A stretch of 64,000 bases of DNA from positions 125,072,526-125,136,525 of the forward strand of contig NC_083403.1 in NCBI RefSeq assembly GCF_020745735.1, given 5' to 3'. Each line of letters begins with the position of its first letter. Position 1 is the stretch's first letter. This DNA is from Hemiscyllium ocellatum (Eukaryota). Made by a program: the position numbers and the translations under genes. The notes beneath the pieces are model-generated. The model was not told the origin of the DNA, ran no database searches, and saw only the letters and a list, made by a program, of their open reading frames with translations. Positions 421 through 51,590 of this stretch are shown one piece after another.

Positions 421-2449
421 TGCAAAGAAATTGAATCACTGCTTTATGTATTAAGTTATCCATAGTTACTTTATTTTTGTTTATTTTTAATACATTCAAC
501 ACTTTATGATTTCTTGTTTATTCCTTAATCTTATTCTTTGCTTGTATGAAATTTACTTATCTCATATTCCTAGTTGAAAAATAAGGTACAAATGTCATCA
601 ACGTTCAAAGGTTAATGCAATATATCATGAAAAAGCTTGTGTTGTGCTGTTTAAAACACAATATTAATATGCAGTGGTTAGGCTAAATAGCTACCAGGTA
701 CTAAGAAATGAGGCTGGGCAAAGTTTTTGGGCTCAGGGTTAGAGAGATGGTAGTGAGGTGGTAATGTTGCTGGACTAGTAAGCCACAGCACAAGCTAATG
801 CTCTGGGTATAGGGGTTCAATTGCCACAGAAGCAGCTAATAAAAAATCTGGAACGTAAAACAGTTCTTTATAATGATGATAACTAGCATTGATTGATGTG
901 AAGAAAAATCTAATTCGCAAGGAAGAAAATCTGCCATCCCTACCTAGTATAGCCTCCATATGAATCCAGATGTCTGTGGTTAACTCCAAACTGTTGCCTA
1001 GAAAACCATTAATTTAATAGACAACTTTGGAAAACAAATGGAAAAAGAAACCGTCTTCAAGCTTCAATGACACTATCTGAAGCAACGTATATAGTTTCCC
1101 ATTGAATAACCATTGATTATTCACCAATAGAATTCTATTTTAAATAATGAAATTGGTTATTCAGTCTGGATTGAGCCTGCATCAAATGGACAGTTTGGCT
1201 ATCATTTTCACAGAATCAGTGTGAGGAACACAACATGATACAATTTTCCTAAATTCCACAGATTAAAATCCCTTTCAAACTATAATCTCATCCAACAAAA
1301 TTATCAGAAGGATTACTGTCTTATGATCAGTCTTAGCTATCTATTGTTCCTTATACAATCTCAATTACTCCACAAGCGAAAGAATCACCATCCTGCCTGA
1401 TCAGCAAGTCTAAACAATGTTGTCCATTTTGAGTAAATATCTGGCTCTTTGCAATTTTTACAATTCAAGTAATTTATTCTGGATATTATCAGCACGTGCA
1501 TTATCCAGGCGGTCACTAGCATCCCCTCATAACTCTGATAGATGAATAATTTTAAAAACAACTTCTTCCAGTGTGTGGTGGAAATCAGCAGAAAATCCAT
1601 TTTCATCTAACTAAATTTCTATTTAGTTTTTCAAGAAATCTAATCCATTGGATGTTTCTTTGAAATATGTATTCATAGCAGATGTCATAAGTACTGGAAG
1701 ATATGGTAATTGTTGCCTTTATAAAATAATTTAAGTACAATGCTTGATGTATTTTAAAGTAATAGAGAGATTCTGTTACTATCGATCTTCTACTTGCAAC
1801 CATTACAGCAAATAACATTTTTTGCAGACTCCCTTTCAGATCACTTCTTTCTTAATTTTTTTCTCCTCTGTAATTGCTGGCTTGCAATATTATTGATATC
1901 TTATTAAGCTGTCCTAAAATATTACTACATTTAATTTGCAAAAATCTTCCTCATTTTTGGAAAAATTATTGTTGGAGTCATTGAGAGGGTGAAAGCTCAA
2001 CAACAGTGAGCTTTCCTTAAGAAAATGAACTTAATGATCCTGATTTGAGTTTACAATGAGTAGATTTAACTATCGGGTTCCCCTACTTAATGATGAATTT
2101 AGAATTAAAGCCTTCCACAGAACTCCTAGAGTGGGATCAAATTCTCTCTGATTGCAACAGTCATGTATGTTCCATTAAATGTGCGTAACTAGCGTCTTTT
2201 CTTTATATTTTACAGAGCTTTAAAAGAATTTAAATGGTGAACAAAACACATTTCAATTTTATCAGATGACTCCTAGATATGAACAGGACGTGCTTGTTAT
2301 TGAAGTGGTTTGATGCACCATTACAGTCAACATTTTAGATTTTATCTGTCTAAAAGTCTTCTGTCTGCTCACTGTAGAAATCATGTCTGAAATAAACTTG
2401 GTTGCAACTCAGTTGTGGTGGACTTCATGTAGGCATGCATGAACTGCAA

Positions 2450-2784
2450 GGAGAAAGTGAAGTCTGCAGATGCTCGAGATCAAAGCTGAAAATGTGTTGC
2501 TGGAAAAGCGCAGCAGGTCAGGCAGCATCCAAGGAACAGGAGATTCGACGTTTCGGGCATAAGCCCTTCTTCAGGAATTGAGGAGAAAATGAGGTCTGCA
2601 GATGCTGGAGATCAGAGCCGAAAATGTGTTGCTGGAAAAGCGCAGCAGGTCAGGCAGTATCCAAGGAACAGGAGATTCGACGTTTCGGGCATAAGCCCTT
2701 CTTCAGGCTTATGCCCGAAACGTCGAATCTCCTGTTCCTTGGATGCTGCCTGACCTGCTGCGCTTTTCCAGCAACACATTTTCA
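2450..2784 (-). mobile_element. Hammerhead-bearing short element (family A): two tandem 132-bp units plus an inverted arm
   Basis: Units start at 2449 and 2581; inverted partial copy 2706-2784. 16-bp TSD catgcatRaactgcaa at 2434-2449 and 2783-2798. Confidence 0.85.
2543..2578 (-). ncRNA. Minimal type I hammerhead ribozyme
   Basis: Minus strand: AUUC CUGAAGA A GGGC-UUAU-GCCC GAAA CG UC^GAAU. Helix I AUUC/GAAU, palindromic ACGU helix III. Confidence 0.82.
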
Positions 2785-3209
2785 TGCATAAACTGCAATC
2801 AAGTTGACATGTCATCTAAAAGCTAGCATGCCCACTGTAGGACATGTAACATTTACAATGGTGCCGCATCAAGTGTTACCCTGAGGTCAAGGATAATGGA
2901 ACAGTGGAGATGAAGCAAGTTTGCATATGGTTTAGACATCAACTCTAAATATTTGCGAACATGAAATTTGGCTTTACAATGAATGACAGAGGGGTGAATA
3001 AATTCCTCTCTTATCATTCCTGAAGTTGCTTGAACAATATCTGAATATTTTTAATGATTTGACTTCTCAATTCATTATGTTTTGACCATATGATAAAGAG
3101 AAAGGTAGACAGATCTCAAGCTAACCAACATGTATGAAAATGATATTAATCGTCCTCTACAATCTTTGCTGGTTAGTCTGACAGATCTGGTATCATATTT
3201 ATACTCGTC

Positions 3210-6230: not shown

Positions 6231-8045
6231 TGACGGGAGTAAGCTATCCTAGTTCTGGATTAGTGGTGCTGGAAGAGCACAGCAGCTCAGGAAATATCCA
6301 CGGAGCAGCGAAATCGACGTTTCGGGCAAAATGACTGATGAAGGGCTTTTGCCCGAAACGTCGATTTCGCTGCTCCATGGATGCTGCCTGAACTGCTGTG
6401 CTCTTCCAGCATCACTAATCCAGAATCTGGTTTCCAGCATCTTTAGTCATTGTTTTTACCTCGCAAGCTATCCTAGATCTGGTCCTGTGTAATGAGATAG
6501 GAATAATTAATGGCCTTATAGTTAGGGATCCTCTTGGAAGGAGTGATCACAGTATGGTTGAATTTAGAATACCCATGGAGAGTGTGAAAATAAAATCCAA
6601 TACCAGGGTCCTGTGCTTAAACAAGGGAGCCTACAATAGAATGAGGGACGATTTGGCTAAAGTAGTCAGGAAACAAAGATTGTACAGTGGGACAGTTGAC
6701 GAGCACTAGACGACTTTCAAAGCAATTTTTCAAAGAGCTCAGCAAAAGTGTATTCCATTGAAAAGGAAGGACTGTAAGAAAAGGGGTAATCTTCCATGGT
6801 TATCTAAGGAAATAAGGAAGGGTATCAAATTGAAAGAGAAGGCATACAAAGTGGCCAAAAACAGCATGAAACGAGAAGATTGGGAAAACTTTAAAGGTGC
6901 ACAGAAAGCCACAAAAAGAGCTATAAAGAAAAGTAAGAGACTCTATGACATGAGAAAAAAACTAGCACCGAATATAAAGACAGATAGCAAAAGTTTCTGT
7001 AAATATATAAAATGAAAAAGAGTGGCTAAAGTAAGCATTGGTCCTTTAGAGGATGAGAAGAGGCATTTAGCTATGGGATATGAGGAAATGGCCAATGCAT
7101 TGAACAGGTATTTTATATTGGTCTTCACAGTGGAGGATACTAATAACACCCCAGTAATTGACAAAAGACAGAGGAAGGTGTCGACCTGGAAACAATCCTT
7201 ATTACAGAAGACATAATGTTGGGCAAGCTAATGGAGCTAAGAATGGACAGATGCAGCATGGATTCATGAAGGGTAGTTCATGCTTAACAAATCTTTTGGA
7301 ATTCTATGAAGGCATTATAAGCAAGGTGAACAATGGGGACCCAGTGGATGTGGTGTACCTAGATTTCCAAAAGCCCTTCGACAAGGTGCCACACAAGAGG
7401 CTGCTGCACAAGATAAGGATGCATGGCAAAGTATTAGCATAATAAGGGATTGGTTGACTAGCAGGACAATTTTTATCGAGATGCCTTGCTACTTCTTCTT
7501 TGATAATAGACTTAAGCATCTTCCCCACTACAGAGGTTAAGCTAACCAGTCTATACTTCCCCATCTTTTGTCAAACTCACTTTTTAAGCAGTAGCATCAC
7601 ATTTGCTGTTTTCCAATCTGCTGGGATTGCCCCAGAGTCCAGTGAATTTTGGAAAATTACCACCAGTGCACTTGCTATTTCTCCCATCATCCTTTTTAAT
7701 ACCCTAGAAAAGGGGTAATCTTCCATGGTTATCTAAGGAAATAAGGAAGGGTATCAAATTGAAAGAGAAGGCATACAAAGTGGCCAAAAACAGCATGAAA
7801 CGAGAAGATTGGGAAAACTTTAAAGGTGCACAGAAAGCCACAAAAAGAGCTATAAAGAAAAGTAAGAGACTCTATGACATGAGAAAAAAACTAGCACCGA
7901 ATATAAAGACAGATAGCAAAAGTTTCTGTAAATATATAAAATGAAAAAGAGTGGCTAAAGTAAGCATTGGTCCTTTAGAGGATGAGAAGAGGCATTTAGC
8001 CAGGAGACTTGTCCATTCTTAGCTCCATTAGCTTGCTCCCCATCA
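6230..8045. mobile_element. Rearranged CR1 ORF2 fragment (deletion, inversion, 295-bp duplication)
   Basis: Plus-strand RT pieces, inverted block 7463-7705, and 6777-7071 repeated at 7706-8000. Confidence 0.85.
6253..6464 (+). mobile_element. Fold-back hammerhead element (family A variant) inserted in a CR1
   Basis: Inverted arms. Core CTGATGA AGGGC TTTT GCCC GAAACGTC at 6335-6362. TSD aagctatcctag at 6241-6252 and 6465-6476. Confidence 0.82.
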
Positions 8046-11834: not shown

Positions 11835-11871
11835 CTACCTGAAGAAGGAGTGAGGCTTTGAAAGCTTGTGG
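11835..11871 (+). ncRNA. Degenerate hammerhead ribozyme, family B, in a Penelope-type terminal repeat (about 11525-11940)
   Basis: CUAC CUGAAGA A GGAGU-GAG-GCUUU GAAA GC UU^GUGG. Helix I CUAC/GUGG, palindromic AAGCUU, helix II mostly G-U wobbles. Followed by AATAAA. Confidence 0.6.
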
Positions 11872-11940
11872 TTTCAAATAAACCTGTTGGTCTATAATCC
11901 GGTGTCATGTGAATTTTGACTTTGTCCACCCCAGTCCAAT

Positions 11941-12258: not shown

Positions 12259-12702
12259 ATCAAACATTGGCACCGCAGCATAAAATGGTTGGCATGGGCA
12301 GGCAGATGAGAATGAGATGGCCATCTTTTTCAGAAAGACTCTGTTGAAAAGGCAAGAAGGCAGTGTGTACTTTTGGAGGGAGGATGGTGTGCTCTGTGTG
12401 TATTGCCCACACAAGTTATTTGCTCTCCTTGATTCCCCCCCAGTCGTGCCTTCAAAAACCCATCCACGATTCTCCTCCCAATGTCCCCAATCTCTGTTGT
12501 GCCTGAAAGGTTGGAATGACTTTAAATCAATACTCATTGTTCTTTTCCCAACCTAGAAATAACACCAGTGAGATTAGGCATTGTTTGCCTGTCTCTCGCC
12601 TGCTTACGGCTGACCATAGTGAATTATAATTTTAGGACAGCTGTGTTCCACATCACACGATGCAGCACTGAATTTTCCTTCTGGTGTTGGACAAGTAGTA
12701 TA

Positions 12703-12936
12703 CAAAGTCGAAGAGTGTGGCGCTGGAAAAGCACAGCCAGTCAGGCAGCATCCAAGGAGCAGGAGAATTGACATTTCGAGCATAAGCCCTTCATCAGGAA
12801 TGAGGGGTGGCTGATGAAGAACGTATGCTTGAAACATCGATTCTCCTGCTCCTCGGATGCTGCCTGACTGGCTGTGCTTTTCTAGCACCACAGTCTTTGA
12901 CACTGATCTCCAGCATCTGCAGTCCTTACTTCCTCC
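12703..12936. mobile_element. Older fold-back hammerhead element (family A), cores decayed
   Basis: Inverted arms homologous to 2450-2784, with CTGATGA remnants on both strands. Degenerate TSD aagYagtat. Confidence 0.75.
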
Positions 12937-17624: not shown

Positions 17625-20600
17625 AACCACACTCTCTCAGCAGAGCAGGTAAGGGCTGTTTGGCAGTGGCTGTTTGAAGGCTCGGCGACGTTTGTTAAAC
17701 GGTTTAAATTTGAATTTTTTTTTTAAAAAGCGCGGAGCGGACCCGGAAGGTGGTGTAGCGCAAGCCTACCTGGGTAAGTTGTTTTCCTATAAAGGCACGC
17801 AGGAGAGGAACCCGAGGCACTACAGAGGTAGAGCCTCCCACCCGCCCTCCTCCTCTCACCTAATAATAAGACCCGTTGTGGTAAGAAGGTAAGTGCTGCA
17901 TTTTGCTTTTCTAGTTTTTTATAGGTTACTTTTAGAGGGATGGCAGTGAAGGCAGTGCAATGTTCCTCTTGCAACATGTTTGAGGTGAGGGATGCCATGG
18001 TCGTCCCTGCTGATTACACTTGCAGGAAGTGCACCCATCTCCAGCTCCTCCAAGACCGTGTTAGGGAACTGGAGCTGGAGTTGGATGAACTTAGGATCGT
18101 TCGGGAGGCAGAGGGGGTCATAGATCAGAGCTTTAGGGAAGTAGTAACTCCAAAGATTGCAGACAGATGGGTCACAGTGAGGGGGACTGGGAGGAAGCAG
18201 CCAGTGCAGAGACCCCCTGCGGCCGTTCAACTCAAGAACAAGTATACCGTTTTGGATACTTGTAGGGGGGACGACTTACCAGGGGTAAGCAATGGGGTTC
18301 AGGCCTCTGGCACGGAGCCTGTCCCCGTTGCTCAGAAGGGAAGGGTGGAGAAGAGCAGAGCAATAGTTATTGGAGACTCGAAATTTCGGGGCACAGATAG
18401 GCAGTTTTGTGGGGGCAAGAGAGACTCATGTTTGGTATGTTGCCTCCCAGGTGCAAGGGTTTGTGATGTCTCTGATCGTATTTTCCGGGTCCTTAAGGGG
18501 GAGGGGGAGCAGCCCGAAGTCATGGTCCACGTTGGCACCAACGACATAGGTAGGAAGAGGGATAAGGATGTTAGGCAGGCTCTCAGGGAGCTAGGTTGGA
18601 AGCTCAGAGTTAGAACAAACAGAGTTGTTGTCTCTGGTTTGTTACCCGTGCCACGTGATAGAGAGTCGGGGAATAGGGAGAGAGAGCAGTTAAATGCGTG
18701 GCTACAGGGATGGTGCAGGAGGGAGGGATTCCAGTTTCTGGATAACTGGGGTTCTTTCTGAGGAAGGTGGGTCCTCTATAAACAGGATGGTGTACACCTG
18801 AACCTGAGGGGTACCAGTATCCTTGGGGGGAGGTTTGCTCATGCTCTATTGGGGGGTTTAAATTAATTCTGCAGGGGCATGAGAACCTAGACTGTAGCTT
18901 TAGGGTGCAGGACCTGGAGTGTAGGGAGGTTAGGAACATGGCATCAATCTCGAAGGAGGGTGCCTGTAAACAGGAAGGTGGCTTGAAGTGTGTATACTTC
19001 AATGCGAGAAGTACGCGAAATAAGGAATTTGCAGCGTGGGTTGGTACTTGGGAGTTCGATGTTGTGGCTATTACGGAGACATGGGTGGACCAGGGACAGG
19101 ATTGGTTGTTGTAGGTTCCAGGGTTTAAATGTTTTAGTAGGGTCAGAGGTGGGGGTAAAAGAGGGGGAGGTGTGGCATTGCTTGTCAAAGATAGTATAAC
19201 AGCAATGGAAAGGAAGATGGATGAAGACTCGCCATCTGAGGTAGTTTTGGCTGAGCTTAGAAATAGGAAAGGTGAGGTCACCCTGTTAGGAGTTTTCTAC
19301 AGGCCTCCTAATAGTCCTAGAGACGTAGAAGAAAGTAATAGGGTGGTTGTTATGGGGGTCTTTAACTTTCCAGACATTGACTGGGAAAGCTATAACTCGA
19401 GTACGTTAGATGGGTCGGTGTTTGTCCAATGTGTGCAGGAGGGTTTCCTGACACAATATGTAGACAGGCCAACAAGAGCTGAGGCCATACTGGATTTGGT
19501 TCTGGGTAACGAACCAGGCCAGGTGTTAGAATTGGAGGTAGTGAGCACTTTGGGGACAGTGACCACAATTTGGTGACTTTTACTCAGTAATGGAGAGGGA
19601 TAAGTGTGCACTACAGGGCAAGATTTATAGCTGGGGGCAGGGAAATTATGATGCGGTGAGGCATGACTTAGGATGCGTGGCTTGGAAAAGTAGGCTTCAA
19701 GGAAAGGGTGCAATCGATATGTGGAGCTTGTTCAAGGAGCAACAACTGAGTGTCCTTGATAAGTATGTACCTGTCAGGCAGGGAGGAAAGCGTCGTGTGA
19801 GGGAGCCGTGGTTTAATAAGGAATTGGAATCCCTTGTGAAAGGGAAGAGGGCAGCCTATGTAAAGATGAGGCATGAAGGTTCAATTGGGACGATTGAGAG
19901 TTATAAGGTAGCCAGGAAGGATCTAAAGAGAGAGCTAAGAGCAGCAAGGAGGGGACATGAAAAGTCCTTGGTTGGTAGGATTAGGTAAAACCCAAAGGCT
20001 TTCTATAGGTATGTCAGGAATAAAAGGATGACGAGGGTAGGAATAGGTCCAGTCAAAGATAGTCGTGGGAAGTTGCGTGTGGAGGCTGAAGAAATTGGGG
20101 AGACACTGAATGAATACTTTTCGTCAGTATTCACTCAGGAACAGGACATTGTTGCCGATGTATATATTGAGTCACAATTAATTAGAATGGATGGCTTTGA
20201 GATATATAGGGAAGAGGAGGTGGAAATTCTGGAAAGGGTGAATGTAAATAAGTCCCCTGGGCCTGATAGCATTTATCCTAGCATTCTCTGGGAAGCAAGG
20301 GAGGAGATTGCAGAGCCATTGGCCTTGATTTTTATGTCCTTGTTGTCTACAGGAATAGTGCCAGAAGACTGGAGGATAGCAAATGCGGTTCCCTTGTTCA
20401 AGAAGGGGAGTAGGGATAACTCTAGTAACTTTAGGCCGGTGAGTCTTACGTCTGTTGTGGGCAAAGTCTTAGAGAGAATTGTAAGGGATAGGATTTATGA
20501 ACATCTGGATAGGAATAATGTGATCAAGGATAGTCAGCATGGTTTTGTGAAGGGCAGGACGTGCCTCACAAACCTTATTGAATTCTTTGAGAAGGTGACT

Positions 20601-21795
20601 AAGGAGGTGGACGAGGGTAAAGCAGTAGATGTGGTGTATATGGATTTTAGTAAGGCATTTGATAAGGTTCCCCATGGTAGGCTACTGCAAATATACGGAG
20701 GTATGGCATTGAGGGGGAGTTGGAGGTTTGGATTAGGAATTGGCTGGCTGGAAGAAGACAGAGGGTGATAGTTGATGGTAAAAGGTTCATCTTGGAGTGC
20801 AGTTACCAGCGTTGTTCTGAAAGGATGTGTTTTGGGACCATTGCTGTTTGTCATTTTTATAAATTACCTGGAGGAGGGGCTAGAAGGTTGGGTGAGCAAG
20901 TTTGCAGATGATACGAAAGTCGGTGAAGTTGTTGATAGTGAGGAAGGATGTGGCAGGTTACAGCGAGATATAGATAAGCTGCAGAGCTGGGCAGAAAGGT
21001 GGCAAATGGAGTTCAATGTAGCTAAGTGTGAAGTGATTCACTTTGGTAAGAGTAACAAGAAGATGGAGTACTGGGCTAATGGTCGGATACTTGGTAGTGT
21101 GGATGAGCAGAGGGATCTTGGTGTCCATGTACACAGATCTCTGAAAGTTGCCACCCAGGTAAATAGTGCTGTGAAGACAGCATATGGCGTATTGGCTTTT
21201 ATTGGTAGAGGAACTGAGTTCCGGAGTCCTGAGGTCATGTTGCAGTTGCATAAGACTCTGGTGCGGCCGCATCTGGAGTATTGTGTGCAGTTTTGGTCAC
21301 CATATTATAGGAAGGATGTGGAGGCACTGGAATGGGTGCAAAGGAGGTTTACCAGGATGTTGCCTGGTATGGTAGGAAGATCGTATGAGGAAAGGCTGAG
21401 GCACTTGGGGCTGTTTTCTTTGGAGAAAAGAAGGTTTGGGGTGACTTGATAGAGGTGTACAAGATGATTAGGGGTTTAGATAGGGTTGACCATGAGAACC
21501 TTTTTCCACGTACGGAGTCAGATATTACGAGGGGGCATAGCTTTAAATTAAGGGGTGGTAGGTATAGGACTGATGTTAGGGGTAGATTCTTTACTCAGCG
21601 AGTCGTGAGTTCATGGAATGCCCTGCCAGTAACAGTGGTGGACTCTCCCTCTTTATGGGCATTTAAACGGGCATTGGATAGGCATATGGAGGATAATGGG
21701 CTAGTGTAGGTTAGGTGGGCTTGGATTGGCGCAACATCGAGGGCCGAAGGGCCTGTACTGCACTGTATTTTTCTAAGGTCTATATTCTATGTTCT
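17625..21795 (+). mobile_element. Near full-length CR1 (HER1-like) LINE in CMPK2 intron 3, antisense to the gene, inactivated
   Basis: 5'UTR, ORF1 from 17940, ORF2 APE endonuclease + RT (QHGF, YMDFSKAFDKVPH, FADD) broken by stops and frameshifts, and a (tatgttc)-type tail. Confidence 0.93.
17940..18761 (+). pseudogene. CR1 ORF1p: zinc finger, coiled coil, SGNH/GDSL esterase
   Basis: CSSC...CRKC, heptad LQDRVRELELELDEL, IGDS, HVGTND. The DGVH motif lies just past a premature TGA. Confidence 0.88.
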
Positions 21796-25719: not shown

Positions 25720-25844
25720 GAAGGGCTAATGCTCGAAACGTCGAATTCCCTATTCCTGAGATGCTGCCTGGCCTGCTGTGCTTTGACCAGCAACACATTT
25801 TCAGCTGTGATCTCCAGCATCTGCAGACCTCATTTTTTACTTAC
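25720..25844 (+). mobile_element. Family A monomer, 5'-truncated within the hammerhead core (CMPK2 intron 2)
   Basis: gaagggctaatgctcgaaacgtcgaatt...ctgcagacctc. 12-bp TSD tgactgcctggt at 25708-25719 and 25845-25856. Confidence 0.8.
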
Positions 25845-44702: not shown

Positions 44703-44797
44703 GCTTTCGATTTCTGTTCTAATGAAGTGAAACTTTGAACGAAGCATGGTCTGAGTGATTACTAGTCATCCCGGTTACGTCAGAGACAGTATATATA
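44703..44797 (+). promoter_or_regulatory. RSAD2 promoter: ISRE, IRF-E, CRE-like element, TATA box
   Basis: GCTTTCGATTTC (=GAAATCGAAAGC) 44703-44714, GAAGTGAAACT 44724-44734, TTACGTCA 44775-44782 and TATATATA 44790-44797, about 80 nt before the ATG. Confidence 0.8.
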
Positions 44798-44874
44798 CAC
44801 CTAACCATCAACAATCTGTACAACCCTTGTTAGGAACACATTCCGAGTTAGCTGTGGTCAGGAGGGGAAAAAAA

Positions 44875-45178
44875 ATGTACGTGGTGGTTATTTGCATTAA
44901 ACTCCTGCTGCAAGCTTGTATTGACAAAGCGGGCGAAATCTCGCGCTGGTTGATGAGGCTGGTAACCTTGAGTCAATGTGGGCTCATTGAGTGGAGACGG
45001 GGAAGAGTCACAAGCAGCGATGGGACCCAAGAGCGGAGTGTGGTCCCCACCAGTGTCAACTATCATTTCACTCGGCAATGTAACTACAAGTGCGGCTTCT
45101 GTTTCCACACCGCCAAGTCATCATTTGTGTTGCCCCTGGAAGAAGCCAAAAGGGGACTAGAGCTACTAAAGGCAGCCG
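44875..45178 (+). CDS. RSAD2: RSAD2/viperin coding exon 1
   Basis: Hydrophobic N-terminal helix [13 protein letters not shown]..., then [24 protein letters not shown] (radical SAM CxxxCxxC). Donor G|GTAAGC. Confidence 0.96.
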
Positions 45179-45324
45179 GTAAGCAAGCAGCGGAATTAGG
45201 TTTTTGCAGGAGAAAGTTCAATTTCTCTTGGTTCAGAATGATGTTGTGGCTGCCCATTACCCGTTCAAAATTAATTGGGAGAGAATGCTGTTCTAATATA
45301 AGGGTTTTTAAAAATGATTTTAAA

Positions 45325-45456
45325 TAAAACTAAATGACCTGCGGATGCTGGAAATCAGAAACACAAACAGAAATTGCTGGAAAAGCTCAGCAAGTCCAGC
45401 AGCATCTGTGGAGAGAAATCAGAGTTAATGTTTCGGGTCCAGTGACCCTCAGAATT
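45325..45456 (-). mobile_element. Older related short element with decayed hammerhead (relatives near 27138-27228, 43605-43680, 46360-46560, 48620-48715)
   Basis: Shared gctggaRaaactcagcaggtc...gcagcatc...ggagaga body. The minus strand reads ctga-gggtc-actg-gaccc-gaaacatt with part of the core deleted. Confidence 0.6.
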
Positions 45457-45984
45457 GTTACTTACACCTTTTACAATTCACTTCTCTGGAGATGTTTTGG
45501 ATACAAGTCACAGTTGTTTATTTTGCATGATTGTAGGGATCTTATTAAAGTCGCTCATTGACATGGAACAATGCTCAGGTACAATGGGCAAAAACACAAA
45601 GTAGCATTGCTAATGCTGATATGCAATAGGGAGAAAAGAGATAGGGTGGAGAGTGTTCGACCAAATAGAGGAAACGATCGGTTGCAGCCAGCCATTGACA
45701 CACAATGTAATGTTTGGGTCTGGGATATTATTACTACAATGTGAGTAGTGGTGCATTGTGGTAGGGATACCTCTGGACTAGGAGGTCCAAATTCAGGTCC
45801 CACCTGCACAAGAACTCTGTCATTACAGTTTGAATAGCTTGATTAAAATATTCAGAAATATTTTCAGCTGAAGATGGACCATTGCTTCAAGAAATGTTAG
45901 TCTTTGCTCAGTGCTGCAGTTACTGGGAGCACCCACTCACCACACATTTGCAAAGTTTATTTTTCAAGTGTTTTAATATGGAAA

Positions 45985-46290
45985 TGTTGTGGTTCTGTTC
46001 GCCGAGCTGGAAGTTTTTGCTGCAAACGTTTCGTTCCCTGGCTAGGGAACATCATCAGTGCTATTGGAGCCTCCTGTGAAGCGCTGCTTTGATGTTTCTT
46101 CCGGTATTTATAGTGGTTTGTTCTTGCCGCTTCCGGGTGTCAGTTTCAGCTGTAGTGGTTTGTATGTGGGGTCCAGGTCGATGTGTCTGTTGATGGATGT
46201 TCTTAGAAACGTTTGCAGCAAAAACTTCCAGCTCGGCGAACAGAACCACAACAACGGACACCCGAGCTACAAATCTTCAACCAGACTTTA
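45985..46290 (-). mobile_element. Penelope-like element 3' fragment with terminal repeat, hammerhead and inverted arm (RSAD2 intron 1)
   Basis: Minus strand 46197-46108 reads SINRHIDLDPTYKPL...*, resembling the Penelope ORF C-terminus. Inverted arms about 45985-46032 and 46207-46254. TSD aatatggaaatg at 45975-45986 and 46291-46302. Confidence 0.8.
46022..46061 (-). ncRNA. Minimal hammerhead ribozyme, family C (Penelope terminal repeat)
   Basis: Minus strand: GCA CUGAUGA U GUUCCCU-AGCC-AGGGAAC GAAA CG UU^UGC. 7-bp helix II, palindromic AACGUU. Confidence 0.82.
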
Positions 46291-46894
46291 AATATGGAAA
46301 TGGAGTAATAGCGGTTCCAAACATTGCAGAAACGGAATGTTGGGAAATCTATTAACATACAAAAACAGGAAGTGCTGGAGAAGATCATCAGGTCTAGCTG
46401 CATCAGTGGAGAGAAGACCGTGTGAGCGTTTGGAGTCCAATGCCCCTTAGGTCAAAACTTTAACTATGTTTCTCTTTCCATGGATGCTGCCAAACCTGCT
46501 GAGTTTCTCCAGCAATTTCTGTTTTTATTTCAGATCTTCAGCAAAACTCAGTTCTTTGTTTTATTTGAAATTTCCATTTTGTTTTATTTAGCTACTGAAC
46601 TGGGAGGCTCACAAAAAATAATCTTTCCTCAAATATTCCTGTTAAGTATCTCATAGTTATGTAGACCAATTAATAATATTAATAAACCAATTCAGTGATC
46701 TTGCCACACTTCCAGAGGCATATTGACAGAAATACCTTCAGTGCCCATATACTTTAACCATATTGTTTATGTTCTGAAATCTGATTCCTATTTTCTAAAT
46801 ATGCTGTTCGACAAAAGTTTGGCAAGATTTTGTTAATTAACTGTTGGCATCTCATGATTCGATGCAAAACATTCCATTTGTCTTTCTTGCCTAG

Positions 46895-50217: not shown

Positions 50218-51494
50218 CATATCACTTGAGCAGCAGGATTACATGAGGGAAACTGCTTCAGTTTTCCTTTATGATCAGATTCCATTCTCTGTGAAAATTA
50301 TTCATTTCAACACATCTGCTGTCACAGATTAAGCTTTTGTCTTCACTACTGTCAGTTACCAGTCAGCATGTTGCAGGATGTGACAGCTGCAGTCACATCT
50401 GGGACCCAAGTCCATCATTATACTGTCAAGAAAAATGCATCTCTAAGTTTGAAGGTCTGACTGCATACTTCTGTGAATTCAAATAAACACAATGAAACAC
50501 ATTAAGAACTTGTATCGCACTTAACATGATAAAGCACATCATAGAGGTTCACAGCAGCAATGTAAACCATACATACAAAAGCATACAAAGGGTGAGATTG
50601 GGACAGATTACCATATACTTAGTCAAATAGATGGGTTTTAAGTGGTACTTCAAGAATGAGAGTGACAGAGAAATTTCGGGGGCAAATTCCAGAGTTTAGT
50701 GCTTGTGTAGCTAAAGGTACAGTCATCAATGATATATTAAAATCATGGATGCTCAAGAGGTTAGAATTACAGGTAAGTAGTTATGGTATGAGAGAGGTGG
50801 ATTACATGTTTTCTGCAGCAAACCTATGAATCAAGCTGCATTTCCTTCCCAGTGCTAGGGTTCAGGACATCTGCTTGAGACTGGGCAAGAATTTGTAGTT
50901 GGAGGAGGATCCAGTTGCAGTGCTCCATATAAGTACTAATGACCTCGGCAGAACAAATAAGGAGTTTCTGCAAAGTCAGTATTAGAAGCTAGGTGCAATA
51001 TTAAAAAGCAGAAACTCAAAAGTCATCCTGTCTTGACTATGACCTTAGCATTGTACAATTTAGGTATTCTTTTTATTTTCTCAGAGGCTTGCGGTTTTAT
51101 GAAAAAGGCAGTGGAAACAGAGTCCTGGAAGATTTTTAAGGCACAACTAGATGGACTCCTCTTAAGTAAGGAGGTGAAAAGTTATCAGGACAGGTGACAG
51201 TGCAGAGTGGAGGTCAAAATCAGATTAGCCATTTTCTTATTGAATGACAGACCAAGCTTGAGGGGCTAAATTCCTTCTCAGAATTTCTTCTCTCATAAGC
51301 TAATGAATCTTTGGAGTTGTTTACTGCTGAAGACTGACAAGGTTGGTTCAGTAATTATGTTCATGGTTGAAATCAGCAGATTTTTAATAAGTAAGGGAAT
51401 CAAGGGTTATGGGAAAAACAAGTACAAAAGTGAAGTGGGTTATCAGATCAACCGTGATCTCATCGAGTAGTTGAGCTGACTGTTGGGGTGAATG

Positions 51495-51590
51495 CGGGGC
51501 TGAAAATGTGTTGCTGGTTAAAGCACAGCAGGTCAGGCAGCATCCAAGGAACAGGAAATTCGACGTTTCGGGCCAGAGCCCTTCATCAGG
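51495..51590 (-). mobile_element. Family A hammerhead element in RSAD2 intron 4 (antisense to the gene)
   Basis: Core CUGAUGA A GGGC-UCUG-GCCC GAAACGUC intact, helix I 5' strand truncated. 13-bp TSD gttggggtgaatg at 51482-51494 and 51591-51603. Confidence 0.83.

Follow-up and report, generated by a model that had tools for sequence, protein, structure and literature searches.

The window analyzed here, a 64,000-nt stretch of Hemiscyllium ocellatum DNA (contig NC_083403.1, positions 125,072,526 to 125,136,525), is the vertebrate RSAD2/CMPK2 locus. The viperin (RSAD2) exon at 44755-45327 (+) was confirmed against PDB sequences, while CMPK2 exon 1 was placed at 37031-37681 (-) in a preliminary description of the window. 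Fragments of long interspersed elements (LINEs) are numerous, and one LINE with a GDSL-type first open reading frame (ORF1), an apurinic/apyrimidinic (AP) endonuclease, and a reverse transcriptase (RT) lies at 17940-21449 (+). Our subject is insertion A (2434-2798), a young, noncoding insertion of 333 bp that consists of two head-to-tail copies of a 132-nt repeat (units 1 and 2) and one inverted partial copy, enclosed by a target site duplication (TSD). We interpret it as a likely derivative of a Penelope-like retrotransposon (PLE).

Insertion A and its hammerhead motifs

In general, the first account of insertion A, as a direct repeat plus an inverted partial copy inside one TSD, was borne out by coordinates and identities (Table 1). 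Units 1 and 2 (2449-2575 and 2581-2707) start 132 nt apart and are 95% identical, and the direct side amounts to 1.96 head-to-tail units, a partial tandem of the pseudo-long-terminal-repeat (pseudo-LTR) type. The inverted arm complements unit 1 perfectly (100% over 2487-2565) and unit 2 almost so (99% over 2620-2697); in the sense of the element, it is located upstream of unit 2 and is truncated at its 5' end at position 16. The dinucleotide GG at 2706-2707 is common to unit 2 and the inverted arm and constitutes a 2-nt microhomology. A 16-bp TSD is present as described (2434-2449 and 2783-2798), although its two copies match at 15/16 positions (G/A at the eighth base) rather than perfectly. 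We number the unit in the hammerhead sense, with position 1 at 2580 and position 132 at 2449; CUGAAGA then occupies positions 7 to 13, and the cut site falls between positions 34 and 35. The layout of the unit is, in order, a minimal hammerhead, a body of ~60 nt, an inner RT start point, and a 38-nt tail that extends to an outer start point. No open reading frame (ORF) occurs in the insertion. An assembly fold-back artifact was considered and rejected: the arm stops at the TSD, it is identical to the nonadjacent unit, and older, mutated copies follow the same plan. No empty-site paralogue of the flanks was found within the window.

Both minus-strand cores read CUGAAGA-A-GGGC UUAU GCCC-GAAA-CGUC. 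Their GUC triplets (gac on the plus strand) are found at 2547-2549 and 2679-2681, exactly 132 nt apart, as previously noted. The 31-nt core pattern occurs five times in the window versus zero expected and thus is not a product of chance. In core 1 (2574 to 2547), the AAUUC immediately before the core pairs with GAAU past the cut site to form a 4-bp helix I, while core 2 (2706 to 2679) is preceded by inverted-arm sequence (..AUAAGC), which reduces helix I to 1 bp. This agrees with the preliminary description, in which the first hammerhead was complete and the second had lost most of the 5' strand of helix I. An intramolecular helix III is absent, and both cores contain an ACGU palindrome. Rfam hammerhead models gave no match at the gathering threshold across the whole window or at E ≤ 10 across 2300-2900, as expected for a motif without helix III.

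The only Rfam matches were subthreshold ones to several microRNA (miRNA) precursor families at 2647-2756 (best E = 4.6e-13; 60.8 bits versus a gathering score of 90). An miRNA gene at this position was rejected, as the matches are artifacts of the long, perfect 79-bp hairpin.

It had further been suggested that the palindromic ACGU helices form a double hammerhead that releases a 132-nt monomer. The palindromes are indeed present, 132 nt apart, but release of the monomer from insertion A appears unlikely, given the single site predicted to have a helix I, the burial of the complete core, and the unremarkable fold of the monomer. In the standard layout of a double hammerhead, a composite site would combine the core and helix I 5' strand of one motif with the cut-site strand of the other. 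Only the composite site cutting at 2679 would then possess a helix I, and the 2547 site would depend on the strand missing from core 2. In the predicted fold of a transcript of the whole insertion (minimum free energy of -205.9 kcal/mol), the inverted arm is fully paired with unit 1, and the complete core is buried. In linear form, the fold of the 132-nt monomer is no more stable than those of shuffled sequences (z = +0.66), and its circular fold gives z = -0.5 with 58% of bases paired. Cofolding of the two isolated hammerhead domains predicted a dimer that is not recognizable as a double hammerhead; we draw no conclusion from it. We note that poor release at insertion A has no bearing on intact source arrays elsewhere in the genome.

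Family copies, the tandem junction, and differences between the units

Searches with blastn and nhmmer retrieved ~20 family arms in the 64-kb window, to which all counts below refer. These were grouped into eight TSD-flanked insertions (A to H; TSDs of 7 to 18 bp), most of which (7/8) are not tandem. The 3' ends of the arms fall into two classes. The inner class (positions 91 to 101) comprises the inverted arm of A, one arm each of B, C, E, and F, and monomers G and H; the outer class (positions 129 to 137) comprises unit 1 of A, the other arm of B, C, E, and F, and monomer D. A tail of 31 to 41 nt makes up the difference between them. Exactly one arm bears the tail in every two-armed family insertion (5/5), and the count becomes 6/6 with the hairpin of a second family at 45971-46302 (p of ~0.016 if arms choose their start site independently and with equal usage). 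The 5' ends of all arms (13/13) cluster along the 5' edge of the hammerhead (positions -10 to 19) regardless of the 3' start site, and none terminates at the cut site (0/13). Tail-less arms, which begin at the inner start point, are 79 to 110 nt long and stop at a common sequence position, while tail-bearing arms each span one turn of the repeat (two in insertion A) minus 3 to 11 nt. In copy E, which is older, the CpG of the ACGU palindrome has been lost in both arms. Exact-pattern scans of metagenome contigs for further family copies returned no matches.

The periodic stretch of the tandem covers 127 positions, not 132. The pentanucleotide CAATT at the unit junction (2576-2580) occurs once in the insertion and is absent from unit 2. 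It corresponds to the native 5' end of independent copies, namely ATTC before CUGAUGA at 36916 and 12801 (G and the left arm of C), and a few bases resembling the end of the tail are found further upstream of the leader in these two copies. The recurrence of the junction sequence in independent copies indicates that templates with a tail-to-head junction exist, either multimeric or circular.

Units 1 and 2 differ at six positions (55, 94, 98, 106, 120, and 124), five of which are counted in the 38-nt tail. The tail of unit 1 carries T98/G106/T120, compared to A55/G94/T124 in unit 2. Outside the tails, one change is present in 257 nt over the three arms (Fisher p = 0.003 to 0.005), and the body CpGs are intact (12/12). 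In the family as a whole, the variability of the tail does not exceed that of the body. Divergence large enough to yield the tail differences would almost certainly have struck CpGs. Because the body CpGs are intact, the tails of units 1 and 2 probably differed already at the time of insertion, which counts against a faithful double pass around one circle. None of the models tested accounts for the bias of the differences toward the tail. Two of the five tail differences (2449-2486 versus 2581-2618) create CpGs.

Table 1. Features of insertion A and family insertions in the window
Feature	Position	Strand	Remarks
Left TSD copy (CATGCATGAACTGCAA)	2434..2449		15/16 match to 2783-2798; directly abuts the repeat
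Unit 1, full 132 nt, hammerhead sense	2449..2580	-	Position 132 (2449) doubles as the last TSD base
Unit 1 tail, positions 95-132	2449..2486	-	End by the TSD is the outer RT start point; private T98, G106, T120
Minimal hammerhead core 1	2547..2574	-	CUGAAGA, unpaired A, 4-bp helix II with UUAU loop, GAAA, CGUC; predicted cut 2547/2546
Core 1 helix I 5' strand (AAUUC)	2575..2579	-	Pairs with GAAU at 2546-2543; 4 bp only; read from sequence
Junction-specific 5 nt (CAAUU, positions 1-5)	2576..2580	-	Unit 1 only; interrupts the 132-nt periodicity
Unit 2, positions 6-132	2581..2707	-	5-nt 5' truncation; private changes at 55 (2658), 94 (2619), 124 (2589)
Minimal hammerhead core 2	2679..2706	-	Core intact; inverted-arm sequence replaces helix I 5' strand; predicted cut 2679/2678
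Spacer separating unit 2 from inverted arm, 8 nt	2698..2705
Inverted arm, positions 16-94	2706..2784	+	Hammerhead sense; no CUGANGA box, no tail; ends at inner start point, CA common with TSD
Right TSD copy (CATGCATAAACTGCAA)	2783..2798		15/16 match to left copy
Insertion A	2434-2798		Dimer plus inverted arm
Insertion B	6259-6464		Head-to-head hairpin
Insertion C	~12702-12935		Head-to-head hairpin
Insertion D	25720-25844		Monomer
Insertion E	34591-34806		Head-to-head hairpin
Insertion F	~36344-36581		Head-to-head hairpin
Insertion G	36826-36920		Monomer
Insertion H	51495-51590		Monomer

Several further features of the window concern the same kind of element. The hairpin at 45971-46302 is young and belongs to a different minimal-hammerhead family, with a core at 46058 on the minus strand and a 7-bp helix II, GAAACGUU. 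Its 48-nt arms (45985-46032 and 46206-46253) are 100% complementary, its TSD matches at 15/16 positions (45971-45986 and 46287-46302), and a 33-nt tail is found on one arm only. Just downstream of the RSAD2 exon (45337-45452 and 46359-46550), a related family that shares the body/tail layout is represented by diverged copies, partly in inverted pairs. A further CUGAAGA...GAAAGCUU motif with an AGCU palindrome at 11839-11875 (+) may represent a third minimal-hammerhead family. Insertion G lies just beside CMPK2 exon 1. Between the arms of hairpin F (36433-36458), we found an 18-nt antisense hammerhead fragment (positions 8 to 25) and 8 unmatched bases, which suggests more than one template switch. 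Finally, the sequence GAATG (CATTC on the other strand, containing ATT) is present in 3/8 TSDs (34576-34590, 36818-36825, and 51482-51494), directly at the priming end in G and H and four bases away in E. This sequence recalls the reported preference of the anole PLE enzyme for cleavage at ATT.

Proposed assembly of the insertion

Insertion A displays all the noncoding hallmarks of a PLE insertion. We consider it likely that this is a young insertion of a 132-nt noncoding mini-element derived from a PLE and primed from both strands on a multimeric template. As a PLE relative, the element would be nonautonomous, and this copy was probably dead on arrival. Read along the plus strand, the left flank and TSD are followed by antisense sequence starting from the tail complement; read along the minus strand, the right flank and TSD are followed by antisense sequence starting from position 92-94. 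Priming of cDNA from both 3' ends of a 16-bp staggered cut would produce such a layout.

In the pathway that we infer, a PLE enzyme supplied in trans would nick both target strands 16 bp apart. The 3' end of the plus strand would prime at the outer start point (131/132), and ~1.96 units (259 nt) would be copied before a stop at position 6. The template would have at least two head-to-tail units and is most likely a linear transcript produced by reading through a tandem source. The 3' end of the minus strand would prime at the inner start point (92-94) and be extended by 79 nt, back to position 16. The two antisense cDNA ends would then join at the GG/CC microhomology, and fill-in would generate the TSD. 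All arms extend across the cut site, and the template would therefore have been made without hammerhead cleavage. For the origin of the dimer from a linear concatemeric template specifically, we see about an even chance. The preliminary description had proposed a multimeric or circular template. The supply of more than one head-to-tail unit stands, but a circular template is not supported as stated: tandem, inverted arm, and one-sided tail together form the ordinary pattern of PLE insertions, which suffices without a circular RNA.

A circle would nevertheless explain part of the data. If a 132-nt RNA were cut out by the double hammerhead, ligated, and reverse transcribed for about two turns, a dimer would result, and the tail-bearing arms would each cover one turn (two in A) minus 3 to 11 nt, as they do. 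A religated circle also allows the read-through of the cut site in all arms, it fits the tail-to-head junction sequence in A and its short form upstream of the left arm of C and of G, and animal retrozymes do have circular RNA forms (PMC7229834). We regard this origin as unlikely. Two passes around a single circle should yield identical units, yet the two differ at six sites while the body CpGs are intact; the inner-start arms stop at their common position with the 132-nt turn incomplete, and the monomer RNA is not unusually structured in either form. In addition, minimal PLE hammerheads are poor cleavers (Cervera and de la Pena 2014, PMC4209133), and the anole PLE uses unprocessed RNA as its substrate: insertion proceeds normally with hammerhead mutants, and RNA sequencing gave no reads that terminate at the cut site (Frangieh et al. 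2024, PMC11167929). A refined version, in which a Penelope-type RT travels twice around a hammerhead-processed circle of 132 nt and low-fidelity initiation produces the tail differences, is quite unlikely. For the inverted arm, we likewise consider quite unlikely a snap-back in which the first cDNA folds on the helix II palindrome and copies itself. The 2-nt GG/CC overlap and 8-nt loop at the junction lie within the helix II region, and the junction of copy B is also in the helix II loop. The probability of snap-back is lowered by the ends of tail-less arms and monomers, which fall at a fixed start point (91 to 101) rather than scattering as snap-back ends would, and by the absence from the inverted arm of the private change of unit 2 at position 55. 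L1-type twin priming was rejected, as both arms cover positions 16 to 94 and thus overlap, while adjacent segments would be expected.

A single outer TSD is no proof of a single event, since a second homing insertion beside an existing tail leaves the same outer TSD. Unit 2 and the inverted arm might thus have inserted first as a hairpin with its TSD, with unit 1 added later, with almost no new TSD, at a nick made at the end of that tail by the PLE endonuclease, which would recognize tail sequence in DNA. The unit divergence, which exceeds expectation for one very young event, and the longer 5' end of unit 1 (positions 1 to 5) fit this order of events, and the anole PLE endonuclease requires tail sequence for recognition, with insertion into its own repeat envisaged in that report (PMC11167929). 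This would, however, call for a TSD of 0 to 1 bp, compared to 7 to 18 bp in 8/8 window insertions. The differences are confined to the tails instead of being spread along the units, and the inverted arm matches unit 1 exactly but not unit 2, with which it would have been inserted; we therefore find two events improbable. An equally improbable course is a template switch within a single event, in which the enzyme runs to the 5' end of one monomeric RNA and initiates anew on another, from its outer start point. While this would account for the common 5' stopping position of both units and, if tail initiation is error prone, for the unit-specific tails, the junction is precise, like the leaders of the left arm of C and of G, and lacks untemplated bases, and the activity is undocumented for PLE enzymes in the PLE papers cited here. 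Highly improbable, finally, is a tandem duplication of a monomer after insertion by slippage or unequal exchange. Later local duplication had been raised in the preliminary description on account of the unit differences. These are real, and the units are adjacent and 95% identical, but a simple 132-bp duplication is excluded: it predicts 132 periodic positions where 127 are observed and is contradicted by the junction, at which CAATT is single copy and matches the native 5' end of the family. A later duplication also predicts fewer unit differences than a shared origin would, not more.

Some observations weigh against a PLE-derived mini-element primed from both strands on a linear multimer, the interpretation that we favor. 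No PLE RT or GIY-YIG gene was found in the window by Pfam analysis of the ten largest ORFs and a six-frame motif search with regular expressions, and the only domains retrieved were LINE-type RT, AP endonuclease, and GDSL. Within the 64 kb readable here, the mini-element has no sequence link to an autonomous PLE. Neutral divergence among source units does not explain why unit differences concentrate in the tail (5/6), as the family tail is not extra variable. That 5' ends cluster next to the outer start point is as compatible with a circular template as with a linear one. Lastly, it is the end positions of the arms, and these only, that would favor priming from both strands over snap-back.

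Comparison with known systems

The process by which PLEs generate tandem and inverted insertions is still considered undefined. Insertion A alone would be an ordinary product of a known process; its TSD, tandem junction, inverted arm, one-sided tail, and both start points can be read base by base within 333 bp. Abundant mini-elements of this kind would permit a computational test of the linear concatemer, circle, homing, both-strand priming, and snap-back models. Arm end points, tail usage, and unit differences are countable genome-wide, and the counts would bear on the role of the hammerhead, if any. A circular template, if true, would constitute the first vertebrate genomic evidence of circular-RNA-templated retrotransposition.

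PLE insertions are partial tandems, often flanked at the 5' end by a copy that is inverted and 5' truncated; their 30- to 40-bp tail is often found at one end only (Craig et al. 2021, PMC8557442). Insertion A resembles them in its partial tandem, adjacent inverted and truncated copy, one-end tail, hammerhead in the repeat, and variable TSDs among family members. In contrast, it has no ORF, and with a unit of 132 nt the kilobase-scale pattern is shrunk to 333 bp.

A biochemical counterpart is the Poseidon PLE of Anolis carolinensis (PAc). In vitro, its enzyme initiates reverse transcription internally on the RNA, at two adjacent sites that delimit the tail, and both DNA strands are cleaved and extended; the proposed template is a multicopy transcript (PMC11167929). 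Like PAc, insertion A has two adjacent internal start points past its hammerhead, separated by the tail, with both strands extended and the template left uncut, the last two as inferred above. In both cases, the inner start point adjoins an AC-rich stretch (AGCAACACA in A). The PAc start points lie 111 to 118 nt into an ORF, compared to ~60 and 98 nt past the cut site in noncoding sequence in A.

The minimal hammerheads of PLE repeats lack helix III and have a helix I of 4 to 5 bp and an unpaired base 5' of stem II; single motifs are inactive, and dimers are weakly active (PMC4209133). The predicted hammerheads of A are likewise type I, without helix III, and have a palindromic ACGU that can pair between two copies and the unpaired base; helix I is 4 bp in core 1 and 1 bp in core 2. 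Their helix II measures 4 bp, compared to 7 to 8 bp in the Schistosoma families (PMC4209133).

Animal non-LTR retrozymes have been argued to be nonautonomous PLE derivatives, in a study that sampled one cartilaginous fish (Li, Clavereau and Pollet 2026, bioRxiv 10.64898/2026.07.22.740005). Like A, they are short noncoding head-to-tail repeats with TSDs of >4 bp (PMC7229834; Li et al. 2026), and PLE dependence is proposed for them, as it is for A. Each of their units has a type I hammerhead; A has a predicted one in each of its two units, but the upstream motif lacks helix I. The unit of A is 132 nt, compared to the 170- to 400-nt RNAs of retrozymes (PMC7229834). Unlike retrozymes, A reaches only a dimer, and most copies of its family are monomers or hairpins. 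The hammerhead of A is also minimal rather than canonical, and its RNA is not highly self-paired, while retrozyme circles are described as highly self-paired.

A last comparison concerns the inverted arm. L1 5' inversions reportedly arise by twin priming, in which both strands of a staggered cut prime cDNA, a model associated with Ostertag and Kazazian (2001). As in A, the inverted segment is found inside one TSD. The segments produced by L1 twin priming are adjacent on one RNA, however, whereas the two arms of A represent the same part of the element, begun from two fixed start points.

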